DNA of 63,914 nt, counting the filler, from Ministeria vibrans ATCC 50519 (taxonomy: Eukaryota > Protista > Filasterea), in assembly GCA_943704425.1 (NCBI GenBank). It is 11 parts of 11 records of this genome, joined end to end, with 100 filler letters (N's around TTAATTAATTAA, not from the genome) between each part and the next. Parts side by side here need not be neighbours in the genome. Positions count along the whole stretch, not along the records: positions 41,768 to 52,624 come from CALSCP010002346.1; 10 more parts are not named here. One strand, written 5' to 3'. The notes beneath the pieces are model-generated. The model was not told where the DNA came from. It searched no databases and worked only from the letters and a program-made list of their open reading frames with translations. This document shows positions 41,768-53,212 of the stretch, one piece after another (position 1 is the stretch's first letter; each line of letters opens with the position of its first letter). A program made the translations under genes and the position numbers.

Positions 41768-41814
<47 letters not shown>

Positions 41815-41989
41815 AAGAAACAAAATGATAGAGGGAGAGGAGAAAGAAACAAAATGATAGAGAGAGAGAGAGGAGAAAGAAACAAAGTGATAGAGAGAGA
41901 AGAGAGGGCAAGAAACAAATTGAGAGTGTGAGTTGGGGATGAATGCCACTAAGTCGTCAATGGGTACCCATCTTCTTGACCATGGTAGG

Positions 41990-43410
41990 ATAACCCTGGC
42001 GCATCAGTCGACGCGCTTCCTCCTCACCATCCGCTGACTCGCTCATCTTAAACGTCAACGACGACTCGCTGAACGAAACCAATAAGAAAAGAAGAACAAA
42101 AGAAACACACATGTTAAAAAATTGAGCGTGAAGGAATGAAAAACAAAAAAAAAGCAAAAGCGAGAGCAAGTGAGTGAGTGAATGTATATGACGCACCGGA
42201 ATCGCAGATTCTCGGTGGGCACAAAGCCATCAAGGAAGATGTTGATGCCATCACGGACACCAAAGGGCATGGTCACGACACCGTAGGCACCGGGCGAGCC
42301 GTACAACACGCACACAAAGTCAGAGAGGTAGTCAAGAACCTGGAGAAGGAAAGTGCAGAGCGGTGTGTTGAGTGATAGGGAGGACAAGAGAGGAATTTGA
42401 GAATGGTTACGCTAAGATCGTGCTCAACGACAATGATGTAGGTTTGGGCCTCGATGAGCGAGCGGATGACGCGCGCTGCCTTGAGACGCTGCTTCACATC
42501 AAGATACGACGACGGCTCGTCAAACATGTACACGTCCGCTTTCTGCGCAACAAAGAAGAAGAACAAATAGAGTGAGTGGAAACAAAAGAGTCAGAATGAA
42601 AGACACACTTTTATAAGACACGCACAAACACATCGGTGTTGAAATGTAATGAATACCTGAACGGAGACAACACAAATGGCAAAGCGCTGAAGCTCACCAC
42701 CCGAAAGCTCACCAATGGAGCGAGTGCGCACATTCTCCAGCTCGAGAGCGATAGAAAGCTCGTCGATTGCACCGCGCGTGTCCTTTGACTTGAGCAGCTC
42801 GTCCACTGTGCCTTTAATTGCCCTGGGCAGGTTGTCAACGTACTGCGGCTTTACGGCCGTCTAATAATAGAGACGGTGTACGGGTGAGAAATGTACGAAT
42901 GAATGAGCGACTGGAGTGAAACACGAAATTACCTTGAGATTGTCTTCGAGCACTTTGGTGAAGTAATTTTGCAATTCGGAGCCGCGGAAGTATTGCAAGA
43001 TCTCTTGCCAGTCCGGAGGGTCCTAAAATACACCAATGGAGGTTATTCTTATTTCTGCCAGATTATTTTTTCAACGGGCGTGTACGTCGAATCGGCCAAG
43101 GTTTGGCTTGAGTTTGCCTGCGAGGATTTTGAGCGCCGTCGACTTGCCAATGCCGTTGGTGCCGACCAATCCAAGGACCTGACCGGGACGGGGCATGGGA
43201 AGACGATGAAGTTTGAAAGAGTTGGCAGAGTAGCGGTGTGTGACGGAGGTGGACAGGTCCTTGGGCAGATTGATGATGGTGATGGCCTCAAAGGGACACT
43301 TTTTCACACAGATGCCACATCCAATGCACAGTTCTTCCGAGATCCATGCCAGCTACACAGTATGTATGTGTGAGTGTGAGCGAGAGTATATATATATATA
43401 TATATATGTT

Positions 43411-43446
<36 letters not shown>

Positions 43447-44028
43447 TGAAGGGGTCCACACAGAATCGGTCACAAATGGGCTTATTCTGCGTGACTGCGT
43501 CAGTGGAAAGGGGAATGTTAAACCTTCGAATCAAGGCAAAGATGGGCATACGACGCATGGGGATTGAAGAGTCAAAGAGAACGAGCGGCAGAAGAGACAA
43601 GCAGACGATGATGGTTTCGCAATAGAGTGAGTTCCCCTCCTACGGCGTGTTGCTTGTAGCGCACATGGTATCGCACGCCAACCAAACGGTCTAGCGGTGC
43701 TCAGGAGTCCTCGCGAGCAGACGCGCGCCACGGTAAAGCGAAACACAGAGAGTGGATCACCAAAAAAAAAAGCAAGCATGCGCCAGAAGCAACGAAGCGA
43801 CAAAAGGGCCAACGAGCGGCTTCACCGTGTCGAGCGCGCCTCTCGTCGGCTGGCGGGGGCAGCGTGGCGGGCACAGCGAGCCCGGCGTACCTTGGACTTG
43901 GGCGTGACTTCAATGCACAGCTTCCCCATTCGCACAACGGGACACATTCGCTTGCATTCTCGCTGGCATTTCTTTGGTTGGCACCGATCCGGATTAAGGA
44001 TGGCAATACGCGTCAGCTTGTCAGCCAT
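41990..44028 (-). CDS. ABCE1: ABCE1/Rli1 ribosome recycling ATPase, 5' part, multi-exon
   Basis: [64 protein letters not shown]. Confidence 0.97.
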
Positions 44029-44177
44029 GGTGCAAAATTTTCTAGTCAATTATGTGATTTGAGATTTCTGTCCGTAGTAATGAAATATGTAAAGACCATT
44101 CTCGTGATCTAATGCAGAGTCTGAATTCTGAATTTCTGAGATAGAAATTAGCCTTATTCTTGACCCTGTAGTCCACG

Positions 44178-45190
44178 ATGAGCCTACATGCTGAGAGGCC
44201 CGCTGTCACTGTGACCAAGGATGGGGGCGTACGTGTGGGACACATCATTGCGAATTCAGCTCACTCATTCTCTGCGATGACTTGTAGGGTCTCTCGACCG
44301 TCACCATTGTGGGCATTGTAACAAACGTCTTGTCAACGGTCGGCCTGGTCATGGCCAACAAGTATCTGTACGGCGTCATGCTGTTTCACTGCATGATTCT
44401 GCTCACTGGGGTGCACTTTGCCACCACAAGCATTTGTATGCACGTTATGCGGCTGCGAGGCGCCTTTACCTACGAGCATCGGCCGCTCCTGAAGGTGCTG
44501 CCTGTGGCGCTGGGCAGCATTGGCAGCGTGGCTTTTGGCAACCTGTCGCTTGCGTACAATTCCGTGGGCTTTTATCAACTGTCAAAACTCGCAACGATTC
44601 CCATCACCATTCTCGCCGAATATATCATGTACGAGCGCACGGTGAGTCGAAAGATCATTGCCTGCATTGTAGTCCTTCTCTTTGGCATTGGTCTGACCAC
44701 TTCGGCCGACGTCACTGTCAATCTTGTCGGCACTGTCTTTTCGGCACTCCAAGTCCTGTCAACTGTCTTAGCACAGATTTTTACCAAATCCATGCAAGTC
44801 GGCGGCCTCTCGTCCCTCCAGCTACTCTACCTTTCCGCTCCTCTACAGGCACTCGGCTGCTTTATCATCATGCCCATCTTCGACAACATGGACCTGTGGA
44901 ATCTCTCCAGCTTCTACGCCGACAACTTCAGCGGCGAGTACACCATCCCGATCATTCTGTTGACGTGCACCTTCGCCGTAGGCAACAACGTCTCCAACTT
45001 CCTGATCATTGGCAAGACCAGTCCCGTCACCTTCCAAGTGATTGGGCACTTCAAGACGTGCCTCATTCTCACTCTCGGCTTTGTCATCTTCCACTACATC
45101 ATCGACGCTAAGACTGTCACTGGTATTCTTTTTGCCATGACCGGTGTCATCGCGTATGGCGAGGTCAAGAGACGAGCCGCGTTGTCTTGA
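44178..45190 (+). CDS. Nucleotide-sugar transporter, TPT family (SLC35E3/UXT-like)
   Basis: NVLSTVGLVMANK, NLSLAYNSVGFYQLSKL, IIGKTSPVTFQVIGHFKTCLIL; one 5' intron. Confidence 0.88.
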
Positions 45191-45219
45191 AAAGAAGGGA
45201 GGGTCGAGCGAGAAACACA

Positions 45220-45317
<98 letters not shown>

Positions 45318-45467
45318 AGAATAATTAAGTATATTGATCAAGAGGTGCTCGCGTTGAGCGAGTATTATTGTACGAGTGACTGAGCAATAAAGAAAATTGA
45401 GAAAAAAAAAAAACGAATGCATTTCGATGATACCACCCAAACAAGTAATTACGTAAATGAGATATGG

Positions 45468-45957
45468 TCACGAGCTGGAGGCCGTGGCGTCGGTGCGCCC
45501 GTGGGCGCGCGCAAGAGCCTGTTCGCGCCAGGCAAGGTACACGGGAGCGGTGATGAAGGGAGCGACGACAAGGGCGGCGACGGTGCGGAAGGCGGTGGAC
45601 GGGGCGCGCACACGCAAGTCATCGAGCGCAAAGACAGCCATGAAGAGCACAATTAGGGCACTGTGGAAAAGGTGAAGGGCAAAGGGAGCACCTGAGACGT
45701 AGCCGGCGGCCAGAAACGCCGACAGCGAACTATACACGCGTATACACCACATGATGAGGGCCGAGGCGAGAGTGGCATTGGCGCCGATGGTGAAGCCAAA
45801 CATGACCATGGCAATGAGCGCCACGTTGAACTCGGCACGCATGCCATGGGCCGGCGCGGTAGTGGACGACGTGACAGTGGTGCTGGAGGTGTTGTGGGTG
45901 TCCAGGCTGCCGCTGCCACTGTACATTTGCAATTGATTGCGCTTCTCGTCTCGCCCT

Positions 45958-46002
<45 letters not shown>

Positions 46003-48842
46003 CATACACACACATACACACACACAGGAAATGGCCGAGATACAATGAGAAGACTTTAGATGATTCCATACACAACTCGTTCAAATTGCACAGTCGTGGT
46101 CGTACGGATGAGAAGACGACTGAGCAGAGGGTAGAGCAAGGGCATGGCAACGGCGGCAACGGCTGCAATGTAGACGGGTGGGAGTGCGCGCACCGGCATG
46201 GACGCGATTGCGGCTGTGTTGACGATGGAGATGCAAAAGGCCAACGACACATGACCGAGCGTTGGACTGGCAATGTTCTCGCGGGGACGCACACGGCCCA
46301 CCACAGTTTCGCCTGCACTCACAACGACAGATGTGGAGCCTTGAGCACTATCATTCTCTGCGTCTGACACAAGAGAGTGGCGCCAGAGGACGTACGGCGC
46401 AGTGACACAAGTACCAACAACGCTGGAAAGAAGCACCTGGAGTGCACCTCGCGAGGACGTGCGATGCTCGCGACCTCGTTCGAGCACAAAAAACATGCAT
46501 ACCAGTGACGAAAGAGCCGCGGAGAAACACCAGGCGGTCGCGGCGGCCGTGTTCTGCACGGAACTGTCAATGTAGGCACGGAAGAGACAGCCCACAATGT
46601 TGAGGGTCGCATCCATGCCTAGACTGTTGCTTTGCTGTGCACACTCATGCAATTGATGCGGCACCCACATGGACACTATAATACTTGAGCCCAGCAGTGC
46701 AATGGCGGCCAGTAGTAAATACGCATTGGCAAAGGTGATCAGGGCCGCGCACGACCACTTTGCCTTGCTCTTCTCCGTCTCCTGCGCGATCGTGGGCCCA
46801 ACCGTCGTTTCAGCGTCACTGTCCCCCAGCTCGAGTGTCTTGCGGCTCTTGTTGTGCGACAGACCAAACTTGACTGCCAAATATGCGCTCTGGAAACAAA
46901 AAAAAACAAAAAAGAGTTTTCAAGCGCAAGTGAGAAGAAGCGCGTGAAACAAAAAGAGAAGAAGAGAAATGCGAGCCCGTACTCGAAGTGTGCGACGAGC
47001 ATTGAACTTTTTGATTTCGGAGTGGACCGTTGCCATGTGTTCCTGGCTCAGTTCGTGTTCTTGGGCAAAGAAGTCGTGCGTGAGGAGCGTCTCGGCGGAC
47101 TCGCGTTGGGTAGGATCGCGCGTGAGAAGCGCCGTAAGCAGCGCACGAGCCTTCTGGTTGACGCCCTTCCATTTGTCAGGCGGGTAGGGAATGGGATCAA
47201 CGCAGATTTTTCGGGTGAGAGTGGTGCGGTCGCGGCTCTGAAAGGGTGCACAACCTGACAGAAGAATGTACATGATGACGCCACAGGCCCACTCGTCAAT
47301 TTTGAAGTTGTAGTCGTGTCCGCTGATAAGTTCTATATTGCAGAGGCAGAGAATGTGCACGGTGCAAATGAGTGACACAATGCCCAAGTGAGTAGGTAAG
47401 ACATACCCGGAGCCATGTAGGAGGGAGTGCCACAGATAGTGTTAGGATAGAGAGGGTAGCGGTCACTGTACGACAGACCAAAGTCGCACACTTTGATGTT
47501 GATGGTGTCAGGATGTTGCGACGCCTGAAGCAGAATGTTCTCGGGCTTGATATCTAAAAGGAGTGTGTTAGCGTCCAGCTGACCATTATGTGGCCATCGC
47601 TTTGGTTCTTGTCGTTTCGTCTCTCATTTTGCCTATTTGTCACTTTGTCTCTATCTCTTTCTATCACTTAGTATCAATCTCTTTCTATCACTCTCTCTCA
47701 CACACTCTCTCTCTCATATCTCTTCATCACAATCTCTTTCTGTCTCTCTCTCTCTCTCTCTCTGCATCAATGTCCATTCGTGCACGTACCTCGGTGCACC
47801 ACCTTGAGCAGATGCAGATAGGAGACGGCATCGAGCAATTGGTAAACGATTTGCGACGCATGTACCTCTGTGAAGCTGGCGCGTCGCGAGATTTCGTCGA
47901 ACAGATCGCCACCCGTAAGGCTGGGAAAAAGCAAAACAAGAAAGAAGAGTGAGTTAACGTTGCGTCCAATTCCCTCTCTTTCCCTTCGCCTGCCATTATG
48001 TGTAATGCTCTTACAGCTCCATGACAATGTAGTAGTGATCGTCGTCGCGAAATACGTCGTTGAGGAGAACAATATTGGGATGGTGCAGGGATCGTTGGAT
48101 GAGCACTTCGGTGGCAAAGTTACTCTTCTTCAGCAGACGCGACGCAGTGATCGCCTTGAGGGCAAACGTCTTGTTGTTGGACAGCTTGACGACGCGGTGA
48201 ACATAGCCAAACCCACCGCGACCGATGCGCTCGAGCACATCATACTCTTGTGCCGGGTCGCACAACGGACAAAGCGACTCAAAGTCCCGCAACGCCTGCG
48301 AATCGTGCTCCTGGTCCTTGTGCACCAATCCTTCGCTACCACCCGCAGTCGCTACCTTGCTGGGAGTCTTGGCGGCAACGCCAATGAAGGAATAGCTAAC
48401 GACAAGCTCGCCCGTCCCCACCGGCTGCAGTTGCAGCACCTCCTGGCGCACCACGCCATTCGAATTGGCAATTTTGCTCAAGGAGAGGCTTGTCGAGCCA
48501 AGACTGTCGTCTGCCTTCCAGAAATCCCGGTCTTTGACCAGCAGTTGGATCACAGCGCAATTGTCGAGCACAATCGCCTAAAGGTATTTTTTTTTTTTAA
48601 AAATAAGAGTTCCTTTCACGATCATATTGTCAAGGCACCTGACGCGTTGACCACTTGGGTGATGTGGTGCTCTTGCAGGGGCGCGTCTTCCACTTCTTGA
48701 CGCCGTCGACGAGGACGGTGCAGTAGGGATTGGGGGCACTGCCGGCCACGGACGCATCGACGACATGCTGCTTGGGCTGGGGGCCTTTTGGATTCAGGTT
48801 TGCACTGACGATGGTCAGGAGTAGGTTCCCAGTCAGTTGCAT
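45468..48842 (-). CDS. C2 domain - CaMK-family kinase - calmodulin-binding helix - multi-pass membrane domain fusion, seven exons
   Basis: C2 (PNPYCTV..KT..SPKW..VKDRD..DDSLG); GRGGFG, ALK, HRDIKPEN, DFG, CGTPSYMAPE; KKFNARRTLR|SAYLAVK; introns 46890-46982 and 45956-46105 keep frame into the TM exons. Confidence 0.8.
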
Positions 48843-49056
48843 GATCAAATGAGAAATCAATGAGTGAATAGAGTCATTAGTGATTAGAGTGTGACTTGAG
48901 TGCGGTTCAATTATGTTTCAGTTTCCTATTATAAACTATGATAATGAATAGCGTTACGTCCTTGTTGTGTCCCTTCAACAAATATGTGTCGTAAAGTCGT
49001 GCCACTGTATTCATGCCAATAAAGAGAAAAAAAATGTTATACATACACTAACTTTT

Positions 49057-51658
49057 TCACTCGCGACCAGCAAGGAGCAACAGCGATTGCATCTTCTGCG
49101 GCAAAAGCTCGATGACTTCGCGACAGACCGCGAGTTGCTCGTCGGAGTCATGGTAATCGGGATGCGCATCGCAATACTCGACAATGAATTTGTAGTCGAG
49201 ATACCTATGAGAGAGAGGGAGAGAAAAAAACACAAATGTGCGAGTCTGAGATTTGACCGAAAGAGGTGCGCACATGAAAAAGAGGGACGACCTACGCTTT
49301 GTTGGTCTGTAAGAGCTCCATTCGCTTGTTTGGTGGTCCCAAAAACTTGGTCCAGAGTCGCGCACGACCAAACCGCGCCGAAAGCATTGGCTTGACGTAC
49401 AGTGGCTCGAGATCAGAGGGAAGTTGACCTGTTGCGTCGCAGAGCGAGTCGTAAAATCGACTGTACCACTGTACACTTCGCGAGATACTGGGAAACCAAA
49501 ACAAACAGAACATTAGCATCAAAAAGAGACGAGAGATTGGCAACGCACTAAGTGTTGATTTTGGCAATGGCTGCTTTGGTTTCGCTCTGATCGGACTGCG
49601 TCTGCTCAAGCGCACTCATCTACATCAGCAGTTTCAGCACAGGTCACATCGGCTCCCCCTATCACTTTTCTTTTTCGCCCTATCACTTTGATCTTTTGCC
49701 CTATCACTTTTCTTTTTCGCCCTATCACTTTGATCTTTCGCCCCCTCTCTATCACTTTGTTTCTCCCTCCTTTCTCTCTCTATCACTTCGTTTCTCCCTC
49801 CTTTTTTTCCTCTCTCTCTCCAACTCACTTTGGTTTCCATAAGCGATGAGTAGATTTCGGCACATTCAAAGTAGAGCTGCCGCAGTGTCGCAATGTAGTG
49901 CTGAACACTCAGCTGCTCAATCAAAGGCTCAATCAAGTTTGCCCGTTTCTTCAGGGCTTTTCTATATAGTATACACAAAGAAAAGAGGGTGCATAAGACA
50001 AAGAAAGCGCTTAGACGAATGGGAAAGCACGAATGTGCACATACGCTCGAACGGACAAGTCTGCCTCAAAGGCGGCAAGGAAGTTGAGCAGCTGACTGTA
50101 CGCCTGAACGAGCGCCACGTGCTCGGTCACAAACCCATCGAGTGCATAGTAGTCACTAAAGAGGAGCAATAAGGGCTATGAGAGACAGGTGCTTTGGTTG
50201 GGGAGGTACGACGTGGTACAGAGCAGAGAGTGTGCGTTCTTGGCCCATGTGAAAGAGGGCGCGTGCGTGCTCAGGCGTCTCGGCGACGTGGGCGAGTGCG
50301 AGTGCGCTGGTGTATAATGGGGCGGTGCGCAGCTCGGGAAGACACGTGGAAAAGTCGGGAGCAAGCGCGAGAGTGGCGGGGTCAGGCGGAGAGGGCAGTG
50401 GCGCAGGTACATCGTCAAAAAGACGGTTGCGCGACACGCGTAACAGTGCATTGACAAACACCGCCCAGTTGCGCGCCACTTCGGCACGTCGACACTGAAG
50501 TTCCTTTTAAAGTCAAAATAGAATCCGTCAGCGACGTGAGCGCCAAAACAAAACATATATACCTCAGAATTAGGTGGGTGGGAGTCGAGCGAGGAGAACA
50601 TGGCGTCGGCGGCCTGCAGACAGTGCATAGCCTGGGGCCACGCCTCGTCGCCAAGAAAAAAGTTGCACATGCCCGCCGCGTTGATTGCCCACTGGAGTGG
50701 GTCAAAGGAGGCGCTTGAGCGCGTTTTGAGCTGCCGTAACAGCGTCTCGCCACAGTACTTTGCGCCTTGCGCATTGTCATTGAGCATCATGTGCACTTGT
50801 GCCAGATAGAAAAGTGTCTGGGTGTGGGCAACCTCAAGGGAGTCACTCTCACCGGTATTAGCAAGATGTGACACGAGATGGGAGCCGATAGGATAAGGAG
50901 CGGCCGCAGACTCGTCCACGGTACTCTTGAAGGAGACGTAGCCAGCACGCGCTCGCTCAAACAACTGAAACGCCTTCTCGGCATCAGAGCGTTCGCTCCA
51001 CAGAATGCCCAATTGATTCAGAGTAGCAACCAACGTAGCAACCGACTCACGCGTAAATCCAACGGACTCAATGGCAGCCAGCGCTCGGTTGAGTGTGCGC
51101 TCGCCTTCGCCCAACTACGTGTTTGATTGTCGTACGTGGTTTTCCAGGCGTCCTATCGACCAAAACGTACCTCTTCCGTAACTACATAGTTGGCACCGAG
51201 GAAGTAGTCAAGACCACCGAGAACAAGATTGGCAATGGCTGCAGGAAAGAACATGCAGGGAACAGTCTGAGACGAAAGACGACAAGTGCGTATGTGTGTG
51301 TATATAAATATATATGTGTGTGTGTGTGCTTAGTGTGTGTGTGTGTGCTTAGTGTGTGTGTGCTTAGTGTGTGTGTGTGCTTAGTGTGCTTAGTGTGTGT
51401 GTTTGGTACTCGTCTCATCGTCGGGCGCCTCTTCAGCAATGCTGGACACAGCCGAACGAATCTCGTTGATCACTTCACGTGCGGCATACTTGCTCTTGAA
51501 CGGGGTGCTAGCCGGGTCCTCCGCCTGTGTGTACAAGTGTCAGCTGGAGATGTCTGAAAATTGTGTGTGCAAATGCGTACGCTTGAAAGAGCTAACATTT
51601 TGCGCACTAGAGGCTCACCATCGCCGTTAATGTACGCGAGAATCTTTCCCGTTGACAT
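49057..51658 (-). CDS. KIFBP: KIF-binding protein (KBP), multi-exon
   Basis: PFKSKYAAR, NQLGILWSER, HTQTLFYLAQV, YCGETLLRQL, DPLQWAINAA, KKRANLIEPL, CREVIELLPQK. Confidence 0.92.
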
Positions 51659-51942
51659 TGCGAAAAAAGAAGTAGACAGACAAGACTGTGAATTGTCAAT
51701 TGTGATATGTGAAATGTTTCACACACTTTCTTAATTTATCACAATTTCTTTGATCATTATTCGTCGGTCACCGACTTTGACCTGTATCACTGAGTAGTGA
51801 GTACTCTAAATCACCCATTACTGTGTTTAAATGTCGTGGAGAAAGACGTACACTGTGCGCAGGGTATGAAGTTGTCACATCTGTCAAATTCTCTTCGCTA
51901 CTCTGCTCTTCGTGAGTGGGATCCTTGGATCTCTTCCGCATC

Positions 51943-52512
51943 ATGGTTGAATTGGATGTGTATACACCTCCGTTTCAAGTGGCACGGCAATACGTGCCCA
52001 GATCTGCCTGCGTCGTCTATTCTTGTGACGTAGCCTCTTTTTTAGAACTGCTCGACACTCTCGCTCTGGTCGTGCTGACTCCCCCTTTTGCTTGTAGGGC
52101 ACGGAAGAGGAGGAACACGATGCGGAGGTCCTATCCCTTTCATCTGTGAGCGCTATTGACCGAGTTCTGGATGAGACAAGCGTCAAAAGAGCTCTCGAAC
52201 TTACCGCACACGACCCGATCACCTTAAATGTGGGCGGCAAGCGGTTCGAGACGTATCCTTCGACCTTTCTAGCCTATCCAGACACCCTCGTAAGTGTTAC
52301 GCAGTGGCACGTCTCGACCCTTGTGCGCTTCAGATCTGAACAGTCACTCCTTCTTTGTGTGCTTTCGCCGCCCCTCCGCCTCTCTCTCCCTCTCTCCCTG
52401 TCTCTCTTATTCATTCTCATCGCGCCTCATCTGTTATAGTTGGGCGCCATGTTTTCGGAAAGGAACAGATCAATACTCAAAGCGAATAGCAAAGGTGAAT
52501 TTTTTATTGATA
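51943..52512 (+). CDS. KCTD-type BTB/POZ (T1) domain protein, 5' part
   Basis: ITLNVGGKRFETYPSTFLAYPDTL|LGAMFS..GEFFIDR. Confidence 0.88.
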
Positions 52513-52531
52513 GGTCAGTCACGCAAAACTC

Positions 52532-52605
<74 letters not shown>

Positions 52606-53212
52606 GTAATAATAATAATAATAANNNNNNNNNNNNNNNNNNNNNNNNNNNNNNNNNNNNNNNNNNNNTTAATTAATTAANNNNNNNNNNNNNNNNNNNN
52701 NNNNNNNNNNNNNNNNNNNNNNNNGCTCTGGCACTTTGTCCCATCTACCTGAAGAATTGGCTCAATACTGATACCACTCAGTCTCTTCCTTTCCCTAGCT
52801 TACTCTAACAGGCAGAGACACACACGCACATTCGTTTTTTGTTCAATCACACACACACGGACACTGCAACGCGCTGCTTATTGTTGGCCGTGCTCTAAGG
52901 TCTTTAACAGGCAAGTCTGAAGTCTCGGTGACGAGATTCTCTGTTGAAACTGGGGTGGCGAGAGAAATCCCGCAGCTCCGCCAGTCTCTCGCCCCTCACT
53001 CCCTGACAACAGAGAAATCTCAGGCACCACCTGACCCCGTCTCGCCACTGAAAAGGAACACAAGCCTCCTGTACTTGAATAGATGCATCACTCGAGAGGG
53101 AAGGACGTGACTCGGGGACGAGGGAGAGAGTGATGGTCACAGGGCCGAGTCGTGAGAAAAAACAAGAAAAAAACAAGGGACACACTTGATTTCCCATCGC
53201 TCTCGAAAAAAA

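Follow-up and report, generated by a model that had tools for sequence, protein, structure and literature searches.

The window analysed here is a stretch of 63,914 nucleotides made up of 11 joined parts of the Ministeria vibrans ATCC 50519 genome (assembly GCA_943704425.1), and the piece under study is the part at 41768-52624 (CALSCP010002346.1), which is eukaryotic in character, with a G+C content of about 50%, short GT..AG introns and many microsatellites. On the minus strand of this piece we found a seven-exon gene in which a C2 domain, a CaMK-group protein kinase, a helix of the calmodulin-binding type and a duplicated membrane module are joined through canonical introns. The single-gene reading is supported, since the transcripts are spliced accordingly, a second organism has the corresponding parts in a continuous open reading frame (ORF), the helix is homologous to that of CaMKII and the membrane repeat withstood a shuffle test. 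The original prediction, made from the sequence alone, had described these features and the junctions between them, and that observation is confirmed.

Gene structure and transcript evidence

Translated exon by exon, each exon in its own frame and never as a joined protein, the gene runs from an ATG at 48842 to a stop at 45470-45468. This ATG is the earliest in-frame start, with an upstream in-frame stop located at 48920-48918. The coding exons add up to 2664 nt, or 888 codons, and none of them contains an internal stop. Searches and structure models likewise used single exons. Four codons are split between exons (Leu CT/C, Asp G/AT, Glu G/AA and Arg C/GG); the codons for the Asp of the HRD motif and the Glu of the APE motif become complete only after splicing. 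Both introns that had been proposed to join separate ORFs into one gene (46890-46982, phase 0, and 45956-46105, phase 1) are present and are spliced out in transcript contigs. The first of them, intron 5, joins ...KKFNARRTLR in frame to SAYLAVKF..., and its retention would lead to a stop, located at 46920-46922 as expected. In the membrane exon no Met occurs before residue 74, where the first hydrophobic segment ends, so the absence of an earlier ATG, which had been raised against a separate membrane-protein gene, also holds.

Transcript evidence comes from contigs (not reads) of four public runs aligned to 44100-49600. Three of the runs (X1 and X2 of one study, X5 of another) are small assemblies that behave as transcriptomes, their RNA nature being a guess, and X9 is a DNA run. 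Introns 46890-46982, 47333-47406 and 47554-47789 are absent from the contigs of X1, X2 and X5, and introns 47921-48014 and 48578-48638 are also removed in the contigs of X1 and X2; the borders of all of them are GT..AG on the minus strand, with 0 mismatches. The joint between the kinase and the membrane part (46889/46983) is crossed by spliced contigs in X1, X2 and X5, the shorter side measuring 182-255 letters; the joint between exons 6 and 7 (45955/46106) is crossed in X2 only. The X2 contig responsible (record 6, 2862 nt) covers 45326-48861 with all six introns out, and the lengths of its pieces sum exactly to the seven exons plus untranslated regions. At intron 6 it passes from 45947 (+7 letters) to 46105/46106, which arithmetically corresponds to the exact removal of 45956-46105. 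Exon 7 is covered by transcript contigs in X1, X2 and X5. No intron-retaining contigs were seen, and the depth in the bins of introns 5 and 6 equals their exon-only share (intron 6 was checked in X2). The DNA run X9 keeps the introns, being continuous over 46035-47679 (record 17) and over 47773-49600 with 0 mismatches. A misassembly at 46900-46980, named in advance as a possible source of error, is ruled out because X9 reads straight through the introns there.

A relative with the same design

A HMMER search with exon 6 against 1.84 billion protein representatives returned a single match, the 661-aa protein P0001, which aligns to exon 6 residues 55-259 (E 2.7e-13, 34% identity). P0001 comes from L001, a 3.3-kb metagenome contig of genomic DNA, in which the rest of a C2 domain, the whole kinase, the segment KKFNARRKLRGAFMAVKW, a low-complexity linker and six membrane helices constitute one uninterrupted ORF. 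In P0001 the linker that separates the regulatory helix from helix 1 is longer than the approximately 35 residues found in M. vibrans. The C2 domain of L001 is split by introns, one of them at the same position as in the M. vibrans gene, and the ORF runs up to a GTACG donor at precisely the point corresponding to the start of intron 6 in the M. vibrans gene, after which the contig ends in a repeat. The search for a co-linear homologue suggested at the outset was thus successful, and because P0001/L001 has the same collinear design in a continuous reading frame, the C2-kinase-helix-membrane fusion is conserved in a second organism. Moreover, since L001 encodes kinase and membrane part in one uninterrupted ORF, the continuity between them is independent of the splicing argument. 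The membrane parts of the two proteins are about 31-34% identical, and within exon 6 the nine residues FFVLERGRE are the same in both at an overall identity of about 31%.

The two loci also differ in their introns. In L001 (659-3322) the kinase domain is intronless, whereas introns interrupt it three times in the M. vibrans gene, with one more in the APE motif; intron positions common to both, in C2 and after helix 6, are mixed with intron loss or gain. The G+C-rich contig L001 stops in a (TCTG)n repeat, and the last exon of the gene presumably lies beyond this end. A loop motif before helix 5 (46290-46260 in the window, about 3000-3040 in L001) is kept, as RVRPRENIASPT versus RLRPCRDVASPS, and a proline-directed kinase, instead of the fused CaMK, could phosphorylate the Ser-Pro that is invariant in it.

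In public data this family is exceptionally rare, and the protein is lineage-restricted. Exons 6 and 7, searched separately, gave no stand-alone relatives, and the membrane region of P0001, used as a query with length limits taken from the whole protein, retrieved only P0001 itself. The repeat alignment found no relatives in bacterial or archaeal genomes, and none were found among viral contigs. Scans with an alignment and with a back-translated FFVLERGRE pattern yielded 29 metagenome loci, all discarded as unrelated or low-complexity after tblastn and ORF inspection. Runs X6-X8, from organisms C and D, contain 5-6% of the sampled words of the locus, which could represent a conserved segment in related species.

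C2 domain, kinase core and regulatory helix

The Pfam Pkinase profile is matched collinearly by four exons (Table 1). Direct reading found all of the kinase motifs intact, as had been predicted: the glycine loop, the VAIK Lys, the alpha-C Glu, HRD, DFG, APE and the activation-loop NTICGT, two of these residues, the HRD Asp and the APE Glu, being supplied through splice joints. We take the Thr of NTICGT to correspond to the activation-loop Thr of CaMKI and CaMKIV. Judging from these features, the domain is a eukaryotic protein kinase of the CaMK group, with a complete catalytic core. Among solved structures, the best match for the kinase lobes is CaMKII (for exon 2, CaMKII together with twitchin), and CASK, DCLK and CDPK are also near. 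The C2 profile is likewise collinear over its two exons, with 23.9 bits for exon 1, above the cut-off of 22, and 14.5 bits for exon 2; its closest solved match is the C2 domain of Itch. Its loop 1 reads D...PNPY and its loop 3 KDRDFWKADD; to both loops we applied what we take to be the Ca2+-coordinating positions of C2 domains, and loop 1 has Asn at the place of the canonical SDPY Asp.

The regulatory helix is divided by intron 5. Exon 5 aligns with CaMKII chains (E 7e-18) up to its very last residue, with EIKKFNARRTLR opposite LKKFNARRKLK, and in the relative the alignment with CaMKII goes on through RGAFMAV (KGAILTT in CaMKII). KKFNARR is identical to CaMKII, and the calmodulin-binding stretch is the best conserved part outside the catalytic core. 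To judge from this alignment, the helix is homologous to the autoinhibitory and calmodulin-binding segment of CaMKII. Its expected completion across the intron agrees with this picture, as the exon 5 half aligns to the CaMKII segment and exon 6 adds SAYLAVKFGL.

Membrane region and its duplication

Hydropathy and predicted helices together indicate about ten membrane helices, laid out as 4 + 2 + 4, instead of the 8-9 counted originally. Helices 2-4, encoded in exon 6, align with helices 8-10, encoded in exon 7, with a Smith-Waterman score of 59, compared with 31.4 +/- 5.2 for shuffles, and 0 of 2000 composition-preserving shuffles reached this score. Only this shuffle-calibrated local alignment made the repeat significant, whereas BLASTP of the membrane halves against each other gave no alignment and hhalign placed the two modules in the same register with an E of 0.13. 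The internal duplication claimed earlier is therefore borne out by the shuffle test, both of the repeat ends quoted for it being present, and module B is a diverged copy of module A. Helices 5-6 have no likeness to either module in local alignment.

With both termini placed in the cytosol, the ten-helix model leaves 18 Lys and Arg residues facing the cytosol and 8 facing away from it; the former number becomes 19 if the Arg whose codon is split between exons 6 and 7 is counted. The Ser/Thr-rich loops of the region, at 46382-46260 and 45953-45834, hold 10 and 14 Ser/Thr residues. Scans of the membrane parts against Pfam (E <= 10) and NCBIfam returned only sub-threshold noise (ER_lumen_recept, DUF4131, Cytochrome_B and TIGR04206) and no enzymatic or transport family. 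Matches obtained by fold search with the predicted membrane models were generic helical hairpins and were discarded.

The question of DUF2834 and PaxA

The ends of the two repeats had been said to recall DUF2834 and PaxA/AtmA-type membrane proteins. As to DUF2834, the protein-language-model feature neighbours of both halves in the ESM Atlas point to it, but the Pfam model of the family does not match. For exon 6, the neighbours are fungal DUF2834 clusters (336-364 aa) with scores of 0.84 and 0.82; for exon 7, the top three listed are bacterial DUF2834 clusters (111-132 aa, 0.86), and the ten best family-annotated neighbours all belong to the DUF2834 family or its clan. The DUF2834 neighbours of both halves have 175-194 shared features. 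Feature scores below 0.9 are to be read as leads only, and those for DUF2834 lie at 0.82-0.86. The Pfam model (PF11196) gave 0 matches at E <= 10 for exon 6, exon 7, their sub-pieces and the membrane part of the relative, a negative result limited by the HMMER filters, which discard most very weak matches. Because the two halves agree independently and the four-helix unit fits the size of the bacterial proteins, a remote kinship of both membrane modules to DUF2834 has moderate support, as a lead.

The strict pattern TAPxYLxWRE is unusable as a DUF2834 signature, since none of the 25 loci that its back-translated form picked out in bacterial genomes encodes a hydrophobic protein. PaxA (IdtA) is a membrane cyclase that makes the tetrahydropyran ring of paspaline and has an essential Asp279 (PMC12038925). 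PaxA and DUF2834 are not linked in PMC3760044 or PMC12038925, and a literature search on DUF2834 retrieved only irrelevant papers.

Feature coordinates and neighbouring genes

Table 1. Exons, selected introns and membrane segments of the C2-kinase-membrane gene (positions in the window)
Feature	Position	Strand	Content
Exon 1	48639..48842	-	Start codon and first half of C2 (68 codons); Pfam C2 23.9 bits, cut-off 22, profile 5-51
Exon 2	48015..48577	-	Rest of C2, linker, kinase N-lobe (GRGGFG glycine loop, FALK lysine); C2 profile 62-97, Pkinase profile 1-78
Exon 3	47790..47920	-	Kinase up to HR/D, Asp codon split G/AT; Pkinase profile 81-122
Exon 4	47407..47553	-	Catalytic loop (D)IKPEN, DFG, activation loop NTICGT, up to AP/E; Pkinase profile 124-166
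Exon 5	46983..47332	-	Kinase C-lobe and first half of the CaMKII-type regulatory segment, ending ...EIKKFNARRTLR; Pkinase profile 169-263
Intron 5	46890..46982	-	93 nt, GTACGG...TTCCAG, phase 0; joins kinase end to membrane part
Exon 6	46106..46889	-	Remainder of the regulatory helix (SAYLAVKFGL), then a charged linker (about 35 residues), module A, Ser/Asp-rich loop, helices 5-6
Module A, helices 1-4	46754-46386	-	In exon 6, end ...TAPYVLWRH
Helices 5-6 (hairpin)	46259-46113	-	In exon 6, after Ser/Asp-rich loop
Intron 6	45956..46105	-	150 nt, GT..AG, phase 1; holds (CA)n/(TA)n microsatellites
Exon 7	45468..45955	-	Coding 45955-45471: Ser/Thr-rich linker (45953-45834), module B, short tail; stop 45470-45468
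Module B, helices 7-10	45833-45528	-	In exon 7, end ...TAPVYLAWRE

The gene is closely flanked on both sides. Downstream, a plus-strand TPT-family transporter gene with a 5' intron at 44229-44287 converges on it. The transcript contigs of the transporter gene end near 45201 and the kinase-gene transcript reaches 45326, entering the (GA)n repeat at 45202-45325, so that the 3' ends of the two genes abut or overlap within this microsatellite. Upstream, a minus-strand gene (48978-51114, introns 49202-49292 and 49488-49548) is a homologue of the KIF1-binding protein (KBP_C). A poly(A) trace of this gene at 48978 sets the 5' limit of the kinase gene; it lies only about 135 nt from the kinase ATG, so that the promoter region is very short. 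Further away, the minus strand of 42055-44049 carries an ABCE1/RNase L inhibitor gene (Fer4_RLI, ABC_tran) of several exons with microsatellite-rich introns, and the start of a BTB/POZ (BTB_2) gene lies on the plus strand at 52146-52624. A long AAT/ATT run, read as poly-Asn or poly-Ile depending on the frame, closes the piece. An Rfam scan of the piece returned 0 matches.

Proposed mechanism and alternative explanations

In our judgement, the seven-exon gene probably encodes an 888-residue integral-membrane kinase that is released by Ca2+/calmodulin and is tethered to, and controls, a DUF2834-like module. From the sequence we infer both that the kinase is gated by Ca2+/calmodulin and what the membrane module does. 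The C2 domain, the kinase and the regulatory helix would reside in the cytosol, because the N-terminus has no signal sequence. In the resting state the KKFNARR helix would block the kinase, and the binding of Ca2+/calmodulin would free the kinase from it; the C2 domain may contribute lipid docking. The flexible linker, of some 35 residues and longer in the relative, would keep the kinase at the membrane module, and this tethering would make the likeliest substrates the Ser/Thr-rich loops that the module itself exposes to the cytosol, along with membrane proteins nearby. As a result, the DUF2834-like membrane activity would be placed under Ca2+ control.

A number of observations weigh against this proposal. 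The position of CaMKII Thr286, which lies in an R-x-x-T context, is occupied by Val in the M. vibrans protein and by Ala in the relative, and the activation-loop Thr of the M. vibrans kinase is Lys in the relative. The M. vibrans C2 domain lacks one canonical Ca2+-binding Asp (the Asn in the SDPY place), and the relative's C2 has fewer acidic loop residues. As to topology, basic residues are found on both sides of helices 4 and 10, and the positive-inside rule is violated by the charged loops that follow helices 3 and 9, which are conserved. AlphaFold2 models of the membrane part are poor, with a pLDDT (predicted local distance difference test) of 58 for exon 7 alone and 53 for exon 6 modelled from a two-sequence alignment. 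Contigs drop rare forms, so that a minor intron-retaining isoform encoding a soluble C2-kinase could escape them, and the removal of intron 6 rests on one contig, beside a masked repeat.

It is also possible, though we regard it as doubtful, that the protein is a bifunctional kinase, in which an activity of the duplicated DUF2834-like module itself, either transport or membrane-embedded catalysis, would be centred on the conserved ERGRE loop and would be switched by the fused Ca2+/calmodulin kinase through phosphorylation of the module's Ser/Thr-rich loops in the cytosol. If true, the DUF2834 family, widespread but uncharacterised, would gain its first functional handle, and the protein would represent a new class of membrane effectors controlled by Ca2+.

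Three other explanations have to be weighed. According to the first, which we consider unlikely, the membrane region is an anchor only, which would attach a Ca2+/calmodulin kinase of the ordinary sort to one particular membrane; its helices would have no activity of their own and would not be a substrate, and the kinase would phosphorylate other proteins there. The linker before helix 1 is indeed tether-like, being variable in length and of low complexity, and the membrane part matches no enzymatic or transport family. However, one helix would suffice for anchoring, whereas this protein has about ten, which bear an ancient internal duplication, and the family to which the language-model neighbours belong is widespread and consists of stand-alone membrane proteins. 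The charged motif of nine residues is identical between distant relatives, and we counted the identity of FFVLERGRE, set against the roughly 31% overall, in favour of a membrane function beyond mere anchoring.

The second explanation, to which we give only a small chance, reverses the direction of signalling: the membrane module would sense a lipid, metabolite or ion and control the kinase, and the helix would be mainly an autoinhibitor and not a calmodulin target. In both organisms the membrane part comes directly after the regulatory helix, which would fit such an arrangement, and the usual switch residues, Thr286 and the activation-loop Thr, are not conserved. Yet a long, variable, low-complexity linker would be a poor transmitter of conformational change, and it is the calmodulin-binding stretch, with KKFNARR just as in CaMKII, that is best conserved outside the catalytic core. 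Finally, an artefactual fusion, whether of adjacent genes joined by read-through or chimeric transcript assembly or with downstream ORFs that are untranslated, is very unlikely: the guessed RNA nature of the runs, the use of contigs and the single contig bridging intron 6 leave some room for it, but three runs from two studies show the in-frame splice 46889/46983, no ATG precedes residue 74 of the membrane exon, a further 422 codons stay open across two introns, the second organism has the same parts as one uninterrupted genomic ORF and the membrane part is conserved as protein (E 2.7e-13).

For the preferred reading of a tethered, Ca2+/calmodulin-released kinase, the fusion itself hints that the kinase and the membrane parts work together. 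It also suggests a link to Ca2+ signalling for DUF2834-like proteins, which have no known role, and offers a concrete test protein. For annotation, the locus calls for caution: ORF-based gene calling splits it, and databases hold only the truncated relative, under the name 'serine/threonine protein kinase'.

Comparison with known systems

A survey of stramenopiles has described the variety of CAMK kinases there, and in the kinome of Phytophthora infestans every kinase with membrane helices belongs to the TKL (tyrosine kinase-like) group and none to CAMK (PMC3019232). Our literature search found no published description of a CaMK with a multi-pass membrane domain. We also considered a receptor-like transmembrane kinase of the TKL or RLK (receptor-like kinase) type and rejected it, as the order of the parts is reversed, the protein starts with C2 and has no signal sequence, and the kinase is CaMK-like. 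CaMKI, CaMKII and CaMKIV are soluble or peripherally attached, and we know of no CaM-kinase that continues into a multi-pass membrane domain.

The closest known system is CaMKII: no other solved structure matches the kinase lobes better, and it aligns through KKFNARRxLx with both the M. vibrans protein and its relative. In CaMKII the hub (association) domain forms a holoenzyme of 12-14 subunits. This domain is absent from the M. vibrans protein (no Pfam match in exons 6-7), which instead has the ten-helix membrane region. The M. vibrans protein differs further in its additional N-terminal C2 domain and in having no Thr at the position of Thr286; a CaMKI/IV-style activation-loop Thr is present in it alone and not in the relative. 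With CDPK and CCaMK it shares a CaMK-group kinase followed by an autoinhibitory junction, and presumably also the decoding of Ca2+ within one polypeptide. Those kinases, however, which are soluble or lipid-anchored, have EF-hand or visinin-like sensors fused to them, whereas the M. vibrans protein has no EF hands and is predicted to be integral to the membrane.

Fusions of multi-pass membrane domains with kinases are known from the TRPM6/7 channel-kinases (chanzymes) and from the oomycete GPCR-PIP kinases (G-protein-coupled receptors fused to phosphatidylinositol phosphate kinases). They resemble the present case in that a multi-pass module and a kinase share one chain, and they suggest how it would work, with a membrane activity coupled to phosphorylation. 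Unlike it, they have an alpha-kinase or a lipid kinase, place the membrane part first and have unrelated membrane folds, and none of them is known to have a calmodulin-type autoinhibitory helix before the membrane helices. The parts of the M. vibrans protein are thus of known kinds and their combination is new: a kinase and a calmodulin-type switch appear to be wired directly to a ten-helix, duplicated membrane module, in a design kept in two organisms.

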